A stretch of 64,000 nucleotides of DNA from Rhodosorus marinus CCMP1338. Taxonomy: Eukaryota > Plantae > Rhodophyta. Shown here in pieces: positions 1,234-11,663 of the stretch. The position numbers were made by a program, and so were the translations under genes. The stretch's first letter is position 1; every line of letters begins with the position of its first letter. The notes under the pieces were generated by a model, which did not search any database, had not been told where the DNA came from, and saw only the letters and a list, made by a program, of their open reading frames with translations. The stretch lies in NCBI GenBank assembly GCA_029953675.1, contig JAMWBK010000002.1, positions 992,001-1,056,000 on the forward strand, in the 5' to 3' direction.

Positions 1234-2489
1234 CTTGTATAATTTGCTGAATGCGGTTAAAACTTGTCCCCCATAGCGTCAGATGGTTTCAATGCATCTG
1301 TCTCTCGCTGAGGTATGAATAACTTGGTGATGGAGTTCCAGGAATCTGACATGTAAAATTAGGACTCTGAGCTTGGTTCGTGGTGGATCAAGCTCTGGAT
1401 GGATTGTTCAAATGGATAATAAACTGAGTCGCTTTTGAGACTACATAGTTTCCAGTTTTCTATGGGTTCTGGTTGAGCTTCTGGAGGCACACTCCACAAC
1501 TGCGCAAAGGACCGAGGAGTATAAAATTGGCAGCGTGTAACAACCAGCACCAACAAGCTGCTGGCACCCTCCTACAGCGGCGCTGTAGAGGCACAAGTCA
1601 TCGCAGAAAGATGACGTATTCACGACTTCCTCAGTAGACCCACGCTTATCAGTTCAGAAAAGAATAACCGGAGGAGAAACCTGGTTTTATTCTCGGGACT
1701 GCTTTGGGAAGAAAGCCCAGCAAATCCCAATCTTCCGTATCGATGCATTTCCTCTTACCTCCATGGTCAAAGTCAAGCTAATGGAACGCCAAGCAATCCA
1801 ATCCGTGCAACACTAGATAGCGACCATTGCCCAAACCCCAAACCACACAGCCCGCTGGCAAAGAAACATCGGAAAAACAAAATACGGACAGGAGCCAAAT
1901 CTCCCCCAAAACATTGTCCACGTGTCCCTTAAATACAAAATTATTTAAAACAATAAGCCCCACATATATTATTAATCGAGAAAATATTTTATTACGGACG
2001 TGTGTCCTAATATAATTCGACTAACGGTCTAGTATCAAATGAGTTTTTAGTCCAAAAAAGAAGACCACGTCATTTTTAATTTTATTTTTGAAAAACTGAA
2101 TGAACGCTTAGTCGTCATCTGTCTGTTATGTGACGTGATAGGAAACGCAGTGGGGTTTGGGTGAGGTGGAATATTTAGGTGAGCAAAGTTGGAGAGACTC
2201 TTGGCGATGGTATGGAGGGGACAGAGAGAGAGAGAGAGTTTGGAGCCAGGATTTATAGATGATGAGAGTTGCGGAGAGAATTGGAAATTTTCTGTGTTGA
2301 TGGTTTCGTTTTGTTGGGTATGATGTGGACTTGAAAAAATCGGGGGGGGGGAGGGGATCTGGTATTTCTTGTACGATTTCGGTAGTTTTCTTATTGGGTC
2401 TTTGTGAGAAGCCGTTAGTAGCGTTATCTTAGGTTTTCGCCGCTGTATTTTCCGAACAAGCTACTAGCCTGGGCTTGATCGTTGCGAAG

Positions 2490-5015
2490 ATGCGTTCAAG
2501 GTGGCTTGTGGTATGGTTGACTGTCGGAGTTTTCTGTGCACTGGATTCCCGGGCTGAGATACTGGCGGATGGCATAGCCAAGTCTCCTGAAGAAGATGAC
2601 GGTAGATCTCGGCTGTTTCAGAGGTTTGATGTTGATAATGATGGTAATCAAGTCGTTCTCCTTCGGTCTATATGCGAGGCCGCCGCTGCATTAGCGCTTA
2701 CGTGCTCTGAACGTGCTCAGGTCAATTAAACGAGGAGGAAGTCGCGGAGATGCTGAAGCAGCTCGAAAGGGCGAAAAATAAAAAGGGAGATGGAGAGGAC
2801 TCGGACGGATTGCACGAAGTTTGGATAGATGGTGAGTCGGTCCAGGTTGGGGAGAGCGATTTTCAATTGCTTTTCAAGCAGCTGTCGAACTTGAAGCAGA
2901 CAAAGGTTGGCTACTCACGGGGGACATCCGAAGGAAGAATTTTTAAATTAGTCTCGTGCTAATGAATTACATCCTGTTCGTCGTTGCGTTTCGTACCAAC
3001 AGGATCCGAGCAAGGATCCGCGAATGAGCCTCCAGGAAGATATCATCTTCGTTCAGGACCTTGTAATTATCTTGGTTTCTGCTACTATTGGCGGAACACT
3101 TGCATCATTGCTCAAACAGCCACCGCTCATGGGGTAGGCTCTGTCGGCTCATCGCATCCTTGAGGTGGCCGCCCCCTAAGCATCACGTCCTTTTCTCTGT
3201 TCAGGTATATTTTCGGCGGCATGCTGATTGGACCGGGATGCTTGGGATTGGTGACTGAACTAGTAGAAATGGAAACACTGGCGAGTTTGGGCATCGCGTT
3301 CTTACTGTTCTCTCTTGGAATCGAGTTTTCCCTCACGGAACTGCAGAGGGGTAAGTTCATCTTGTGTCGGAATGTCCTGTGGGTGGTGGGTTGAATCAGA
3401 TCTTTAACACGGCCCGGACATTTTCAATTTGCAGCGAAGAGAGTTGCCGTCTTTGGGGGTTTGACGTCGATGTTCGGTGTTTCCGTGCTTACTGGAACCC
3501 TTGCGCGAGCTACGGGTCTCGTCAAATCGTACGTCATCCGGGCATCACCCTCTGTTTCCCGGTTTGCAGAACTTTTAGGGACTGGCCTTGGATCTCGATC
3601 TCCGTGAGGTCGTTTTTTGCTTAACCTAGATTGCAACAACTTCGTCGATTGCATAGGCTCCCAACGGCGATCGCTCTGGGTCTCGCCCTGTCGTTATCGT
3701 CAACTGCAATTGTTTTGCAATGCCTGCCAAAGCAGGACTCGTTGCCTACGGTACTATACTCCAGAAGCGTATCATGAAGTTATCCCGTTCACTTCGCATC
3801 ACAGAGTGTGGCTTCACTCGCTTTGCCCCCAATACTCACATGCGACCAATATCCATTCTCCAGGAGACGGCTGATGGGGAGATAACAATCGACGACCCGA
3901 AAGCTCGTAAGGTAGTACTGGCCCTTTTGGTGATTCAGGACATCATGATCGGGCTCATTCTAGCTTTGCTTCCAACGCTGAACGGTACCGCCTCAGAATT
4001 CACGAAAGAATTCATGAGCGCATTCCTCCGACTCGGAATATTCGGTAAGATCATGCCTTGAGCTGAACCGCGCGAGCGCATTCTTCTAGAACTCCTTGTT
4101 TGCGCGGCGGCTAAGCTTCTATATAACTCTTCGATAGTTGTCCTATCACTAATTGTTGCTGAGTACGTGCTGCCTTACGCCTTGGATCGACTTGACAAGT
4201 CGCAAAGCCAAGAGATTTTTACGCTCGGTATTGTTGGGACGTGTCTTATCATTTCGTACGTCAGCGAGAGACTAGGACTGGCCATAGAACTGGGTGAGTG
4301 GACCTCCTTCAATTGAAGCGGATTCGAGTAGTGGCAGGTTTGGGCCACTCCCGTGCGCATGGTAACACCCAGCTAATATTGCGCGATTGGGATCTTCACA
4401 TAGGCGCCTTCGTTGCCGGAATAATGATGTCTGAGTCGAAGTATCGGGACCGAGTTGAGCATTCTGTCGACTCCATCAGGTGCGTATTTCAAGTTATCTG
4501 AAGGGACTTTCTGTAGCGCTGGCGAAATTGAAAGCAGGCTAGCTTGACCTTAATCAGTTCTTCTGTCACTTTCATCAGGGATGTGTTCACCTCAATTTTT
4601 TTCGTGACGATCGGAATGATGATTCACTTCAGCTACTTTTACGCAAACTTCCTACGAATGTTGGGGCTCCTAGTAATCATTTTCGCGGTGAAGGGCTTCG
4701 TGATGACGGCAACATGTTTTCTCTTCGGTGACCTCCCTTTTAGAGCTTCTCTTGCAAGTGGATTAGCTATCTCTCAAGCTGGGGAGTTTACTTTCGTTGT
4801 TGCGAGCACGGTAAGCTTTTTCGGTAGCCAGTTTCTGCCACTCCACTCTGACAGATTGTCGCTTTTGCGGGAAATCCCAGGGTCAAAGTCTCCAATTGTT
4901 CTCAACGAGCGAAACCCGGATGATCAACGGTGCTACGGCGTTATCCATGCTGTTAACACCGTTCCTTATCACCTACATGCGACGATTTGGAAGGAGCATT
5001 GCAACCACGAAGTGA
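2490..5015 (+). CDS. CPA2-family K+/H+ antiporter (KEA4-6/TMCO3-like) with signal peptide and one EF-hand
   Basis: Multi-exon model: hydrophobic N-terminus; DLVIILVSATIGGTLASLLKQPPLMGYIFGGMLIGP; LGIAFLLFSLGIEFS; ALLVIQDIMIGLILALLP; LGAFVAGIMMSES; RDVFTSIFFVTIGM; SQAGEFTFVVAS. The last exon ends ...RSIATTK* at 5015. Confidence 0.88.
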
Positions 5016-5357: not shown

Positions 5358-7222
5358 CTACGCGGTGACGGGCAACTCGGGATCGATCAGATCTCCGAGT
5401 GAACCCTCTTCCTCCAATTTCTTAATCTTTCCGTAACCCCCAACGTACTTTCCATCGACGAAAAGCAAAGGAAGCTTCCCCGATCCCGTTATTTCCTCCA
5501 GAGCATGACCAAGTCCAGGACCACTCTGGCTGTCTTCATCGAGATTCTGCTATCGATCAAAATCAAAAAAACATTAGAATCTCAAATCGACAAGGTGCAA
5601 AGAGGAAGCAATCGCCCGCGGATAACGGAGTCCGAATAGGAAAATACACGTACAATCATAACAGAATTGGCTCCCTGATCTTCCAACAGCTGTACAAGCT
5701 TCTGCGACTGATCACAATAGGACTTTCCAAAAGCAACTAGCTTGTCTTGCTCGATCCTTTCATTCAAAAGCTGATGCCAAGTGGCTTGCGAGCGATCTTT
5801 TGGTATGCTACTGAAGCGCTTGGTGATCTCCTCAAAAGTACCGCAGACGTTGAGATGGCTAGAGCCATCTTCCGCGTTCCAACCTGCGAGCCTGACAACA
5901 TGTACGTATCGAACAGGTGAGTACATGCCAGTCGGCAAGAAAGCTTTTATCTTCTCCATACCTTGGTACTGATCCACTATTGTCGATATCAGCGACAAAG
6001 TCCGCCTCGGAAGCTAGTTCGTAAACAGCTACCGGTACCCTCTTCAAGGAATCATTCACGTCCTGCTCTCGCACGTACCTTCCAGTCTTTTCCGCCCGCA
6101 TCCTGACCCTCTCCATCACCACCTCTCTTGTTGCGTGGACGTACAATATGGCAATTCTGTAATGGTTGTTCTCCCGACGTATTTGTTCAAAAACTTGTCG
6201 ATACCAGTCATAATCCCTGCACCAGGTTACAGTCCTTAGGTGAGCAACGGCAGTGCACAATTCGAGCCTACTACAAAACTACTAATTTTCACTCCCAGAG
6301 ATTGTAATGTCTACGTACCGAAACGAACCGTCGATCCAGATGTTCTTGTTACATCTTAAGGCCGCCTCCTGGCCAATCTCTACAAGGAGGCCGCTTTCCT
6401 TCTGGGTAAGGAAGCCGGCAGTTAATCTGTCGTGCTCAACGTACTTTCCCCATTCAGGTAGCGCGAGTTTAAACTTGTCCGGGTCAAGTTGGACAATATT
6501 CTCCAGTGGAAAATAGCCTTTCTCATTCATCCACTCCAACGTATGACTTTTTCCGGCTCCCATGGGTCCAGCGGTGAAAATAATCCAAGGATGCTCAACG
6601 GATTCTCCCGTTCGAAGAACCGATTTCACAAGCTTGTCCTGAAACCATTGCCTCTCCGGTGCGTAGAACCCATGGTAGCCAGTGTCCAGTTCGCGCCGAA
6701 TATCTTTGTAAATACCAAGGTGAGTCTGCTTCTCAGGATCATCGACTCGATAGTTTTCGGCAGTTGACAAACTGAAGTCATAGGACTTCGGAACTTTCCA
6801 TTCAACCTCCTCAAGTAAACTAGTGTAGCATTGTCGTCGAAGTCGAGAAATAATACCAGAGTGGACAGAAGTATCCAAAAACTGAAGAGCATCCAGAGAC
6901 GCTAGACAATCCTGAAAGTGTGAACACAGCCGTAGCAAGGAGGAAGACGACAGACCACGAAAACGAATCAGATATCCTGCCACTTGACTTGATTATCTAC
7001 AATCGCAGCCGAGGCCCGAGCTCATCACACAGAGCCGATCCCTTTATCCAGCCCCAAAAAGCTTACCTCAGACCTCGAGGGCATGAACCCTCCTTTCTCG
7101 GCCGGCAAGTCATCAACGCTGATACTCCCGTTAATTTTATTACCAACAAACAGTGGAGCAGCCACACCTCGCTTCTTTTCCGCCAGCATGTTTCCCTCAC
7201 GCCAAACAAAATCCGGACCCAA
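5358..7222 (-). CDS. Zeta-toxin-like P-loop kinase fused to a C-terminal glutaredoxin-like domain
   Basis: Kinase part: WIIFTAGPMGAGKS (Walker A), VQLDPDKFK, NIWIDGSFR, IAILYVHATREVVMERVRMRAEKTGR. Phase-compatible GT-AG introns lead into KLVAFGKSYCDQSQKLVQLL...GKLPLLFVDGKYVGGYGKIKKLEEEGSL, with the stop at 5358. The 5' exon structure upstream of ~6830 is uncertain. Confidence 0.75.
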
Positions 7223-8966
7223 TTCCTAACCAGGGACTAAATCTCAAACTCCCGTACCGGCCCCCCCCCCCAAAAAAAAAACAAAAAACTACTGCACAAC
7301 CGACAAAAAATACAGGATCTTACATCCCTCCTTCCCAACCCAACTCTCCTCAACCTTCCTTGTCCCATAAACATGCACAATCCCCCTCTCCCACTCTCTC
7401 TCGACCTCCTCTTCCCCCTCAACCCCCCCGAATGTACATGCTTACCAACGGCACGTACTTTATAAAAGCACTTCACATCTCAACACTCCCCCCCTCCCCA
7501 CCAGCGTTACGTATCAAGATGGCAAACTTCCCCTAAACACCAAACCGAACCTGGACCAAAATTCCGGTTATTTTTTATTCACCATTCAAGAATATTCTCC
7601 AGTCAAATACCTTTTTAGGGGATAAAAAAGGAACATCGGCCAAATCAGCGTGCCTCCCGCACGGCCAGCCACATTCTTCCATTTTTAAGGAAACTCAGCA
7701 AGGACAGGCATGACTGACGAGACTCACCCAAAACCGATCTAAGATATTAGAAAACAAACAACCAAACGTGAACCGGTTTTTATTGTATGAGTTACATGTA
7801 ATTAGACTATAACATTCATATAAACATAATTTGTATACTGTAAAGTAGGTTGTACCAATTTCCTATCCGTTGAAGAGGTCGTGTTCTTTTCAGGTGAAAA
7901 ACGTGAAGAGTTTTTTCTTCCGGTTGTCCACCTGATAAAACGATACATTATTTGTATTGAATAAGCTTTTTACAAGATAATTGGTTGAAGAATCGGTTGG
8001 AGCATATCAGTCATTTTGGGTGTATTCAGTCGTTTAATAGTTCGGGCTGCGTGAGATTCGGACGTTTAGCAGAAGTGCGGAGAGCGGCGGGACGCGGTAA
8101 ACCTGCTCGGCAGTTGAAGATTGGCTTCGTGATTTTTGTTTTGTTTTTCGTTTTCTTCTTCTGGCTGAGTAAAAGGTCAGAGAGAGCGTGTCCTGGGTGA
8201 GGAGGTCAACCAGCATTGCCTGTGTTCGCTTTGGCTAGATCTATAAAGTCAACCGATATCAGTAAGTTTACAGTACTGGAAGTTAATCGTGAATAATGAA
8301 TGCTTAATGCAGCGCTTTGGTGAATTTGAGCATTCCAAGACTGGTGAGTACTACAGTGCCCATATTTTCGGGATCAAGCGCTAGTTCACACGACTTCATT
8401 AGTTCAGGTCGAGAGATGTTATCCTGGCACGTGGATATCCTGTACAATACGGGGACAAGCAGGATAGTCTCCCTCTTCCAAAACCCGGAAAGAGTTTGAG
8501 TCTATCAGTTAGAAGCTGAGAAGATGGTGGCCCTTGCTGAACTCCGCTCAGCTTCGGAATTATTAGTTACGAAGTTGAGCGCCTCTCGGACGGGAGTAGT
8601 AATACGTCTGGCCGAGTAGAGCGATGAAAATTCTGTGGATCTCTTTTGCAGTGAAGCCCTCAACAGAAACGAGGAGTCAAGTCATCAATGCTCAAATGAC
8701 GCACAAAAGTTCGTACTCTTAAAACAGGATCACGTCTGGAATTCCACAGCTTCCCTGAATCTACATTAGATAGGGTGTTGACTTAACATATCAGCACCAC
8801 TCCAAACGCGTGGATTTAAGCTCCAAGCCAACATGGCGTCATCGCAAAATGATCTTCTTTCCAGGGCTCTGTCGTCGTGTTCTTGACGGACGCTGTTGCC
8901 AAACTTTCTTCTGTAAAGCTCTCCCCACACAGATCCAATGTCACCATCCCCCCTCCCCCTCCCCCC

Positions 8967-9172
8967 TTCAAAGTGTCCGCACAAGGCCTCCCATGATCGG
9001 TATGGCCAGGTCGTGAACGTAAATGACCACGTCCTCAATCCTCCCTCCTCTCCCTCCCCCTCCCCCTCCCCCTCCCCCTTCAAAGTGTCCGCACAAGGCC
9101 TCCCATGATCGGTATGGCCAGGTCGTGAACGTAAATGACCACGTCCTCAATCCTCCCTCCTCTCCCTCCCCC
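8967..9172. repeat. Direct tandem duplication, period 112 bp, bounded by (CCCCCT)n tracts
   Basis: TTCAAAGTGTCCGCACAAGG...CTCTCCCTCCCCC occurs at 8967 and 9079 and is identical by eye. Confidence 0.9.
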
Positions 9173-10654
9173 CCAAAAAAAAAAAACAAATAACCCTATA
9201 GCAATTGAATCCTCGCTCTTTCCTGACAATCCACTTTTTGGTCTTCTTGGCTCAACCCCTCTTCCCATCAATCACCGAAAATCCCCATCAACGGGGTGAC
9301 ACCGGAAAGCACGTTTTGTCAATACTTTGAATTCACTCCAATCGGGACGGCACGATCTCACGACAACGAAATTAAATAATAACAATAAAACTATTTCTGT
9401 TTTTTGTATAAAAAAAGAAAAATCCGAAAAAATATCCTACGGAAAGGCCTGGGAATTAATCCACATAATTTAGAAATTCATCTCCTCATATCTTCATTTA
9501 AAAAAGTTACAAAAATTCATTGAAGCTAGGTCACTCACCGCAGTTTCTTTTTCATTCACTTTTCAACCTGTTTGCTCACAGCCAACCAACCACGGGCAAT
9601 TGATTTTTCCTCCGCCGGAGATCAATTTCTAAAAACTTTCTTGATCGAGCACGCACAAAAAAATTAAATTCCTAAATAGACTCCCGTGTGAAAAAAAACC
9701 ACATTGTATTTGAAATAAATTTTAAAAATGGAGGACAAATACACTTAACCAATCAATGTTTCGGAAAGAGCCAAATCGATTCGAATACAATTCCCTATTT
9801 TTAAGTTATTTTGGTCATCTGTCATCTCCGCGGATTGTGTTTTCTCTTTTTTGCCTGAGAACCGGCACTTGTTAGCTCGTTGCCAGCTCAGGAAAATGTG
9901 CTCATGGAAGTTGTGGCGGAAGGCTTTTTCTTCGGTGATCGTTTAAACTCTTCAATGCTGCATGTGGTACTCATAAGAAATCCAAAAACTTTCGACAGAC
10001 AGCAGCTCTTCGAAAGCGACGAACCCCACCTATTGGTCTCTTAGTACTTTCCGAATTCGAGTGGAGTGAAGTGTATTCGTCGTGCTCAATGTTGGGATAG
10101 CAGAAATACTCGGATGGCATACCACCCGCACGCACCCGCTCGAAACTTCCCTCACTCCCCCGCCCACCTGCAGCCCACTGAGAAAGAGAATTTGACCGCA
10201 AATCTTTGTTCCCAGTAGTCCACTTCCAAGGCTTGGGTTGAGAATAAGATGTTCACTCTGCTTTCGATACGGCCCCTGGTCTTCACCCGGAGACGCAGGA
10301 CCACCCCTAGCATTCAAAACAATACTAGATTATCATCGCTGGACATGCCAAAGTTGTTACTGAGGACCATAGCTTCTTTCTGCAACTGCTAAGCTGCAAT
10401 CTTTTATTTAGTAGCTCCTCTAGTGACTGATGATCTACAGCGCAAACCTGCCCGAGGGAGTCGAGCTCAGTTCACGTCCTGTACTGCCTAGTCGGTTTGC
10501 CAAGGAGGTGGTGGTTGACGGAGCTGGCTAAGGAGGCCAAGTTGAGGAGCGCTCATCTGAGCATAAGGGAAGGCATGTATTGCGGTTGTTGAAGGCGAGG
10601 TTAGTAAAGGCTTAGGCAGCTTTGACCGCGGTCTATTGGAGAGAAAGTTTCACC

Positions 10655-11663
10655 ATGGGGACTATAGTGAAGCTGTTGTTCTCGCTGTGCGCTCTAGTTG
10701 CCTGGGTCTCTGAGTCGGAAGCCATGGATCCGACCTGGACCCGTGCTCGACTGGGCGATGGGACCGGCATTCCTGTGGGGTCTTTGGATACTGGGTTCAA
10801 TTTGTCGAAGTCTGAACGGCTGGTGCGTGGGAACCTGTCTGGGTCGATTAGGGAGTTCCCTTATCTCGTGGGCATTTTCAAGAAACAACCTGGAGCAGAT
10901 TTTTTTATTTGCACCGGGTCAATTGTACATGAGAGAGTAGTCTTGACTGCAGCCCACTGCCTTAGCCCGTTGGTCCGGGATGCGGCGTATGTCGTTTGCT
11001 ATGGGACTGACGACTTGTCAGACCCAACGCGTCGGAAGTGCACTCAGGTTGTGGGGAGAAAAGTGCATGAGGACTTTGCTGGCAAGGATACAGCTGGCCC
11101 TTTTGATGTCGCCTTGCTGAAGACGAAGGACCCAATGCGTTCGAAGCGTACTGGGATCGTAAAGGTCGACTTCAGCAGGAGAAGCAGCAGGGGAAAGCGG
11201 ACAGGCTTGTTGGTAGGATTTGGGCTGAATCCGAAGGGATGGGACGGTAGCCTTCGATACGTGAAAGCCAAACACAAGCCTATGTCACAATGTGCCGCTT
11301 TCCGCGATGCCAAGTACTTCCAGTGTGCACGCCCAAGAGGACTGAAGGGCTTTGGGGGTACATGTTCCGGAGACAGTGGTTCTCCGTTGATCGAAGGACC
11401 GAAGAAAAACCCCAAGAAGCACAGGGTGGTTGGAGTTCTCAGCTGGGCGTTCATAGGAGAGCTTGATTGTAAGTTGCAGTTGTCCGTCCAATACCGCCAA
11501 CGCAGAACGATTTTTCACTGACAATGTTCTTCTCTCCTCCCACCATCGTGCAGTTGATTGCTCAGAGCTGCCCTCCGGCTACACGCGACTCTCCACACCG
11601 TCCCATAAGAAGTTCCTCTTTCGTTCAATGAGAGAATTCGGGGCAAAGTTCAAGACCGTATGA
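10655..11663 (+). CDS. Secreted S1A (chymotrypsin-fold) serine protease, paralog 1
   Basis: Signal peptide; SER|LVRG activation site; LTAAHC, GPFDVALL and GDSGSP triad motifs. One phase-1 intron at 11469-11553; last exon DFDCSELPSGYTRL...FKTV*. Confidence 0.9.

Follow-up and report, generated by a model that had tools for sequence, protein, structure and literature searches.

Structure and expression of the fused gene

The window analysed here, a stretch of 64,000 nucleotides from the red alga Rhodosorus marinus CCMP1338 (contig JAMWBK010000002.1, positions 992,001 to 1,056,000), carries on its minus strand a nuclear gene of a Rhodosorus-like red alga (Stylonematophyceae) in which a zeta/PezT-type P-loop kinase is joined to a glutaredoxin within one polypeptide. 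Between positions 7189 and 5358 of the window, five exons form one reading frame of 1,398 nucleotides (nt) encoding a protein of 465 amino acids (aa), and all four introns have GT-AG borders. This is a genuine, expressed and conserved kinase-glutaredoxin fusion gene. The predicted protein begins with a poorly ordered N-terminal segment, followed by a conserved extension of 70 residues, a kinase that appears catalytically intact and, at the C-terminus, the glutaredoxin.

Coding exon 1 (7067-7189, residues 1-41) opens with the start ATG at 7189-7187, which aligns with Met1 of the R. marinus ortholog described below and has an in-frame stop 12 codons upstream. Intron 1 (6912-7066; 155 nt, GTAAGC...TTTCAG, phase 0) is followed by exon 2 (6319-6911, residues 42-239), containing the N-terminal extension, the Walker A motif GPMGAGKS (6569-6546, residues 156-163), the catalytic DPD (6485-6477, residues 184-186), E219 and the phosphate-contact loop DGSFR (residues 235-239), in which the codon of R239 is divided by intron 2 (6217-6318; 102 nt, GTACGT...GTGCAG, phase 2). 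The C-terminal half of the kinase core, including R275, R279 and R285, is encoded by exon 3 (5962-6216, residues 239-324). After intron 3 (5892-5961; 70 nt, GTATGG...TGTCAG, phase 2), exon 4 (5654-5891, residues 324-403), which is enclosed by an uninterrupted open reading frame (ORF) at 5582-5998, codes for the C-terminal tail of the kinase (PRLAGW...FEEITKRF), the linker and the first half of the glutaredoxin with its active site C383-D-Q-S386 (Cys codon TGT, 5716-5714). The glutaredoxin string in the spliced protein begins KLVAFGKSYCDQS. Intron 4 (5547-5653; 107 nt, GTACGT...TAGCAG, phase 0) separates this from exon 5 (5358-5546, residues 404-465 and the stop TAG at 5360-5358), which encodes the second half of the glutaredoxin with the motifs K427-L-P429, at the cis-Pro position, and G439-G-Y-G-K443. 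The kinase domain therefore spans 5813-6602 (residues 145-350), with introns 2 and 3 inside it, and the glutaredoxin domain 5400-5749 (residues 372-452), with intron 4 inside it.

A sequence-only reading of the same DNA had proposed a spliced fusion between 5358 and 6830. The motifs it named (GPMGAGKS, DPD, DGSFR and the glutaredoxin string) all lie on the minus strand, the active-site Cys codon is exactly where it was placed, and the three phase-compatible introns correspond to introns 2, 3 and 4 (6318-6217, phase 2; 5961-5892, phase 2; 5653-5547, phase 0), with canonical borders. The end of the gene at 5358 was also correct, but exon 1 had been missed: there is no in-frame ATG at 6830, the start is at 7189, and intron 1 lies beyond the range that had been given. 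The last exon had been described as absent from the list of ORFs, when part of it (5358-5468) is in fact listed. The Gln that had been left in brackets is explained by a real NAGNAG tandem at the acceptor of intron 4 (TAGCAG, window 5547-5552). Use of the proximal AG would give one additional Gln (466 aa); the distal AG is the one used in the ortholog complementary DNA (cDNA), giving an exon 5 start at 5546 and 465 aa.

The ortholog is the UniProt/UniRef entry A0A7S0G7Z0 of R. marinus, which is named 'Zeta toxin domain-containing protein', contains both Pfam domains and is 465 aa long. It is 93% identical to the window protein over the full length, the optional Gln being the sole gap. Its source is an intron-free 3.6-kb transcript contig of R. 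marinus (L001), which BLASTN aligned to the window in five blocks (7242-7066, 6913-6318, 6217-5961, 5893-5654 and 5543-4880) whose ends agree with the predicted exon ends. Bases 1-177 of the contig correspond to 7242-7066, so that the alignment reaches beyond the start ATG into the 5' untranslated region. At its other end the contig reaches the exons of a Na+/H+ exchanger gene that is convergent with the fusion gene, and synteny is thus also conserved. The fused mRNA is thus expressed in a sister taxon of the alga from which the window comes. As both Pfam domains exceed their gathering cut-offs and the cDNA matches five exons, chance is excluded, and since the last part of the kinase and the active site of the glutaredoxin are encoded together in exon 4, the fusion is not an artefact of the gene model. 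The possibilities that the glutaredoxin is a gene of its own, or that the model joins the wrong exons, were ruled out by the content of exon 4 together with an ortholog cDNA that crosses all exons.

Comparison of the window with this transcript gave a ratio of non-synonymous to synonymous substitution rates (dN/dS) of 0.11 for the whole protein. The kinase had a lower value (0.046) than the glutaredoxin (0.22), for which the ratio is based on 6 synonymous and 5 non-synonymous changes. The glutaredoxin motifs are the same in both Rhodosorus sequences.

The Na+/H+ exchanger gene lies at about 2220-5015 on the plus strand, consists of multiple exons and has EF-hand matches. As the transcript contig covers both genes (exchanger part 1789-3456), either their 3' ends overlap or the assembly is chimeric. 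Just upstream of the point where the cDNA alignment starts (7242), two homopolymers adjoin each other at about 7262-7285 (around 11 T followed by around 11 G on the minus strand), which may be a promoter or transcription-start feature. Further along, a 112-bp unit with C-rich ends is present in two tandem copies with 99% identity (8949-9172), and an ORF of 299 aa on the plus strand (10622-11521) encodes a hydrophobic N-terminus and the trypsin-like serine protease motifs TAAHC and GDSGSPL. No tRNA or Rfam features were found in the window, which has a guanine-cytosine content of about 47% and short, interrupted ORFs, as expected of a eukaryotic nuclear genome. The sequence-only reading had also noted that no epsilon antitoxin is nearby, and there is indeed no small partner gene, although no search aimed at antitoxins was made.

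Properties of the kinase and glutaredoxin domains

Bacterial zeta and PezT toxins are 3'-kinases of uridine diphosphate N-acetylglucosamine (UDP-GlcNAc), and they were the best matches of the kinase domain by both sequence and fold. The Pfam Zeta_toxin profile (PF06414) matched residues 145-313 with an E-value of 2.9e-22 and 79.5 bits, against a gathering cut-off of 22.3, and a profile of the N-terminal extension and kinase found PezT (2.1e-7) and zeta (1.2e-4) in the PDB. An AlphaFold2 model of the full protein, built on 40 fused homologues, had a mean predicted local distance difference test (pLDDT) score of 82 and a predicted template modelling (pTM) score of 0.68, with pLDDT above 90 across residues 80-350. 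The top kinase neighbours of this model in Foldseek were zeta (1gvn_B, 1.8e-9; 3q8x) and PezT (2p5t), while AvrRxo1 was a weaker neighbour (1.4e-6).

Residue roles were assigned by aligning the family profile to zeta and mapping it on the zeta-UDP-GlcNAc complex. In that complex, zeta D67 is the catalytic base, E100 contacts the ribose 2'-OH, the segment E116-G-T118-x-R120 touches the phosphates of UDP and T128 is the contact to uracil (PMC3062530). The catalytic base (D66 in PezT) corresponds to D186 in QLDPDKFK, the second Asp of D-x-D, and E100 corresponds to E219. The phosphate-contact segment is represented by D235-G-S237-F-R239, with conservative changes of E to D and T to S, and zeta R158 and R171 by R275 and R285. 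All of these positions are invariant in the family, as are G159, G161 and K162 of Walker A. The uracil contact T128 is replaced by V247 and is not conserved. Because the zeta residues are kept except for T128, the residues needed to transfer a phosphate and to hold a nucleoside diphosphate are intact, without specifying the base, and the protein is most likely an active kinase.

The N-terminal extension (residues 78-144), of about 70 residues, has no counterpart in zeta or in the plant enzyme NADKc discussed below. It contains the invariant residues R113, D117, H121, R128, Q132 and D133 and probably reshapes the acceptor site.

With the bacterial toxins, therefore, the kinase shares the fold, the Walker A motif, the catalytic Asp in D-x-D-x-F-K, the [DE]-G-[ST]-x-R loop, the ribose-binding Glu and two Arg. 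In contrast to them, the Rhodosorus gene is eukaryotic, spliced and monocistronic, without an epsilon or PezA partner, and the protein is only about 16-18% identical, has the extra N-terminal extension and a fused glutaredoxin, and has lost the uracil contact. It is presumably a regulated enzyme rather than a poison.

The C-terminal domain is a class I glutaredoxin according to Pfam, PDB sequence matches and Foldseek. The Pfam Glutaredoxin profile (PF00462) matched residues 376-439 with an E-value of 3.7e-6 (27.5 bits for the full protein and 30.8 for the domain; cut-off 22.9). The closest PDB sequences were poplar GrxS12 (3fz9, 2.1e-10), which has the active site WCSYS, and Arabidopsis GrxC5 (3rhb), with WCSYC. 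In Foldseek, the glutaredoxins 5zvl, 2e7p, 3fz9 and 2ht9 were superposed with template modelling scores of 0.85-0.91 and root-mean-square deviations of 0.8-1.6 Å. The claim of the sequence-only reading that a eukaryotic zeta-type kinase is spliced to a complete glutaredoxin fold is thus borne out by Pfam, in which both Zeta_toxin and Glutaredoxin pass their gathering cut-offs, by AlphaFold and Foldseek and by the orthologous transcript.

Among the 40 aligned fused proteins, C383 is invariant (40/40). The second active-site residue is a Cys in 26 of them, as CS[FY]C or a different CxxC, whereas the other 14 have Ser or Thr there (CxxS or CxxT). A monothiol glutaredoxin mechanism requires only the first Cys. 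As that step needs the first Cys alone, the mixture of Cys, Ser and Thr at the second position fits a role of the glutathionylation type. The norm of the family is CS[FY][CS], which is the motif of GrxS12, C5 and Grx2, and Rhodosorus is an outlier at three sites: it has CDQS where the norm is CS[YF][CS], KLP in place of TVP, and GGYGK rather than GGCxD. The monothiol CDQS site of the earlier reading is therefore present, but it is a derived state confined to Rhodosorus rather than the typical form, most of the fused proteins being dithiol. Of the glutathione-binding motifs, P429 and G439-G440 are retained, T-V is changed to K-L and the Asp position is occupied by K443. Like class I CSY[CS] glutaredoxins (GrxS12 3fz9, GrxC5 3rhb and human Grx2 2ht9), the Rhodosorus domain has the thioredoxin fold, an N-terminal active-site Cys where helix 1 begins, the cis-Pro and the GG pair; it differs from them in its fusion to a kinase and in the motifs CDQS, KLP and GGYGK.

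Distribution of the fusion among protists

The kinase family is large and occurs mostly in protists. An exhaustive profile search recovered 7,992 representative clusters at E<=1e-3, of which 4,082 remained at 1e-10 and 1,150 at 1e-30, and the best profile matches all contained the N-terminal extension. A C-terminal glutaredoxin was present in 42 of the 145 clusters at 90% identity that were recovered by word-indexed searches, and in 15 of the best 150 representatives at 50% identity. When 79 family representatives were examined with Pfam, 14 had EF-hands, always as pairs N-terminal of the kinase, and three had a glutaredoxin; fusions to DEP, protein kinase and Exo_endo_phos domains were found once each. 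The EF-hand and the glutaredoxin are thus, on these domain matches, the two recurrent modules that have been added to the family. Two tandem kinase domains were seen in several of the top family matches.

The fusion was found in the red algae Rhodosorus and Purpureofilum (both Stylonemataceae), in the brown and yellow-green algae (Phaeophyceae and Xanthophyceae) Ectocarpus, Pylaiella and Tribonema, in the dinoflagellates Polarella and Alexandrium, in the cryptophyte Guillardia and in the diplonemids Diplonema and Rhynchopus. The labels in the source databases include 'Zeta toxin domain-containing protein', 'glutaredoxin', 'Glutaredoxin-C4' and 'glutaredoxin/predicted ABC-type ATPase'. The architecture had been regarded as hidden and unrecognised by the sequence-only reading, which named wide previous annotation as a point that would count against it. 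This part of the claim fell: the same fusion for Rhodosorus marinus is already in UniProt and MMETSP, and the architecture is public, is widespread in protists, with at least 42 clusters (90% identity) spread over many of their lineages, and is not unique to the Rhodosorus genome. Wide annotation does exist to that extent, but it is automatic only, and a literature search did not find a paper describing a fusion of a zeta-type kinase with a glutaredoxin.

In a neighbour-joining tree of the kinase domain, which is based on distances, is rough and has no support values, the fused forms mostly cluster together. This suggests an old fusion, followed by later losses or obscured by truncated contigs.

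A scan of bacterial and archaeal genomes found a homologue (38% identity) at only two, near-identical loci, both in metagenome-assembled genomes. These homologues (L002, 4356-7413; L003, 332-3757) have a signal peptide and part of the N-terminal extension, and each is followed by two paralogous genes for reductases of flavin mononucleotide (FMN) that depend on NADPH and have hydrophobic N-termini.

The fusion of an Exo_endo_phos domain to a zeta-like kinase was seen in a protein of 1,107 aa from a Trinity transcript (P0223), and a second case came from Symbiodinium pilosum (P0270). The homologues of the Exo_endo_phos domain of P0223 are mostly stand-alone dinoflagellate proteins.

Candidate acceptors and possible redox control of the kinase

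Our preferred explanation, to which we give a probability of roughly 0.55, is that the protein is a small-molecule kinase of the zeta type whose activity is controlled by thiol redox. The kinase would move the gamma-phosphate of a nucleoside triphosphate onto a hydroxyl group of a small metabolite with a nucleoside-diphosphate moiety, the putative acceptor belonging to the class of nicotinamide adenine dinucleotide (NAD+) or of the UDP-sugars. The glutaredoxin, acting via C383, could then link the activity of the kinase to the redox state of glutathione and thiols through a monothiol mechanism, either as a mixed disulfide or through S-glutathionylation. That several eukaryotic supergroups have kept the fusion strongly supports a functional connection of the phosphorylation with thiol redox. 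Most probably, the acceptor is a metabolite with a nucleoside diphosphate, for example NAD+ or a UDP-sugar. Both a substrate such as UDP-GlcNAc or another nucleotide-sugar and regulation by glutathione, as proposed in the earlier reading, are plausible, and NAD+ is as good a candidate for the acceptor as a nucleotide-sugar.

Several points weigh against this explanation. The literature search turned up no biochemical data for any member of the family, and the acceptor class was drawn from alignments at 16-18% identity. The pTM of the model is 0.68 and the linker between the domains has a pLDDT of about 60. The atypical residues of Rhodosorus at the glutathione contacts may weaken canonical glutathione binding, and the score with the NCBIfam equivalog GRX_euk (40.6 bits) is far under its cut-off of 87.25. 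In addition, a Cys of the kinase domain conserved throughout the family was not found in the alignment, and because the kinase domain is without such a conserved Cys there is no evident intramolecular target for the glutaredoxin. A pair of cysteines with the pattern [FYW]C-x5-C follows the PRL motif (alignment columns of residues 326-340) in part of the family, in fused and unfused members, but both are replaced in Rhodosorus, by N and S. A conserved kinase Cys was therefore rejected as the internal target, as none is family-wide and the C-x5-C pair is found in some members only. If the glutaredoxin is regulatory, it probably acts via its own redox or ligand state and not by the reduction of a fixed disulfide.

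As to the identity of the acceptor, an NAD-type molecule and a nucleoside diphosphate (NDP)-sugar are each a tentative choice, with the former placed first, and the remaining probability falls on something else. The first possibility, which we regard as the stronger of the alternatives while still well short of an even chance, is that the protein is a non-canonical NAD+ kinase like NADKc of plants. The glutaredoxin would report the oxidation of glutathione, the supply of NADP+ would rise under oxidative load, and the extra NADP+ would provide NADPH for glutathione reductase. The EF-hand paralogues would then be the form of the enzyme that is switched by Ca2+.

Zeta-like kinases can use NAD, as is known from AvrRxo1, an NAD 3'-kinase effector of a plant pathogen and a structural neighbour of our kinase domain. 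The acceptor-binding motif of zeta is absent from AvrRxo1 (PMC5087710), unlike the Rhodosorus kinase family, which retains it. The precedent in function is Arabidopsis NADKc (At1g04280), a zeta-domain NAD+ kinase that makes NADP+ and is activated by Ca2+/calmodulin (bioRxiv 10.1101/521658). It was the only characterised eukaryotic zeta-domain enzyme that our literature search found. Like our protein it has a eukaryotic zeta-type kinase domain, and its activity is gated by a signalling input; the EF-hands in 14 of the 79 family representatives are a parallel to its control by Ca2+/calmodulin. The regulatory module differs, being a covalently fused glutaredoxin here and bound calmodulin in NADKc. 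With hhalign, the family profile matched NADKc-1 with a probability of 96.9% over 188 columns at 23% identity, within the kinase core only, and the motif PRL-x-x-W, which lies beyond the Pfam core, was common to both.

NADKc is, however, no nearer to the family than PezT is: with one hidden Markov model, NADKc-1 scored 34.8 bits and PezT 33.6 bits, which places the two at equal distance. E219 and R239, which the family shares with zeta, have no equivalents in NADKc. The N-terminal domain of NADKc (about 200 aa, with a 1-5-8-14 calmodulin-binding site) did not align to the N-terminus of the Rhodosorus protein, which lacks this domain and its calmodulin site and has no transmembrane-like segment that could be a membrane anchor (highest 19-residue Kyte-Doolittle mean, 0.93). 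Orthology with the plant enzyme was therefore ruled out, given that the kinase core alone aligns and scores on a par with PezT, and NADKc serves as a precedent for function without placing the protein in its family.

Further support for an NAD+ kinase could come from the residues conserved with zeta, which bind a diphosphate and a ribose, both of which are contained in NAD+. The two bacterial homologues adjoin two genes for NADPH-dependent FMN reductases, but these near-identical loci amount to one observation and give a weak clue. Nocturnin is an NADP(H) phosphatase, and it was the single PDB sequence match of the Exo_endo_phos partner in P0223; this is a weak hint, as the match is marginal (E of about 1e-3) and the fusion is rare. 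A broader proposal, that the protist zeta-like kinases make up a second class of non-canonical NAD+ kinases controlled by Ca2+ via EF-hands and by redox via glutaredoxin, is more doubtful than an NAD+ kinase in Rhodosorus.

Somewhat less likely than an NAD-type acceptor is that the kinase phosphorylates a UDP-sugar or another NDP-sugar, similar to UDP-GlcNAc, as a regulated metabolic step and not as a poison. This would be in line with zeta and PezT being the top matches by sequence and by fold, and with five of the six zeta contacts to UDP-GlcNAc (D186, E219, D235, S237 and R239) being kept or conservatively changed and invariant in the family. The zeta acceptor motif, which the family keeps, is missing from both AvrRxo1 and NADKc. 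However, the contact specific for uracil has been changed (T128 to V247), the conserved contacts reach only the phosphate and ribose and hence leave the sugar and base unspecified, and the invariant N-terminal extension suggests that the acceptor site has been reshaped. To our knowledge, there is also no physiological role for a 3'-phosphorylated UDP-sugar in eukaryotes, which we count against this acceptor.

Turning to the other half of the protein, the Rhodosorus glutaredoxin could be a redox-inactive remnant, with a purely structural or docking function and its glutathione binding lost. The lineage-specific CDQS, KLP and GGYGK at the glutathione contacts, compared with the other fusions and with GrxS12/GrxC5, could be explained in this way, as could the weak Pfam score (27.5 bits) and the score far below the NCBIfam cut-off. 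We consider it unlikely, as the domain still has its catalytic Cys, cis-Pro and GG pair, is modelled with confidence and superposes on glutaredoxins to about 1 Å, the dN/dS is 0.22 with motifs identical in two Rhodosorus sequences, and CxxS monothiol forms are common in the family (14/40). Least probable by a wide margin, and very improbable in our view, is that the fusion is a gene-model artefact made from two adjacent genes, or a selfish module of the toxin-antitoxin kind: zeta domains are classically toxins with an adjacent antitoxin and the last exon is not a long ORF, but exon 4 carries parts of both domains, the spliced cDNA of the sister taxon crosses all five exons, the fusion is conserved across eukaryotic supergroups, and the gene is flanked by a Na+/H+ exchanger and, at some distance, a protease-like ORF, without any small partner gene.

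Kinases of the zeta type have been described as toxins of bacteria, in one effector from a plant pathogen and in a single plant enzyme, NADKc. The Rhodosorus gene belongs to a large branch in eukaryotes, with over 1,000 sequence clusters, that repeatedly couples such a kinase to a signal-sensing domain, either an EF-hand or a glutaredoxin. The protein from Rhodosorus is tractable, as it is predicted to be soluble, has 465 residues and a good model, and offers one obvious mutation, C383S. If the broader proposal of a class of NAD+ kinases is true, the fusion would be a feedback within one polypeptide, from the oxidation of glutathione to the supply of NADP(H), and the EF-hand forms would be candidates for the Ca2+-dependent NAD kinase activity of protists, which was reported long ago in organisms such as Euglena. 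Identification of the acceptor would add a regulated node to the metabolism of algae and other protists, possibly in NADP(H) supply or in nucleotide-sugar metabolism, and would also show a toxin fold that has been turned to a housekeeping role.

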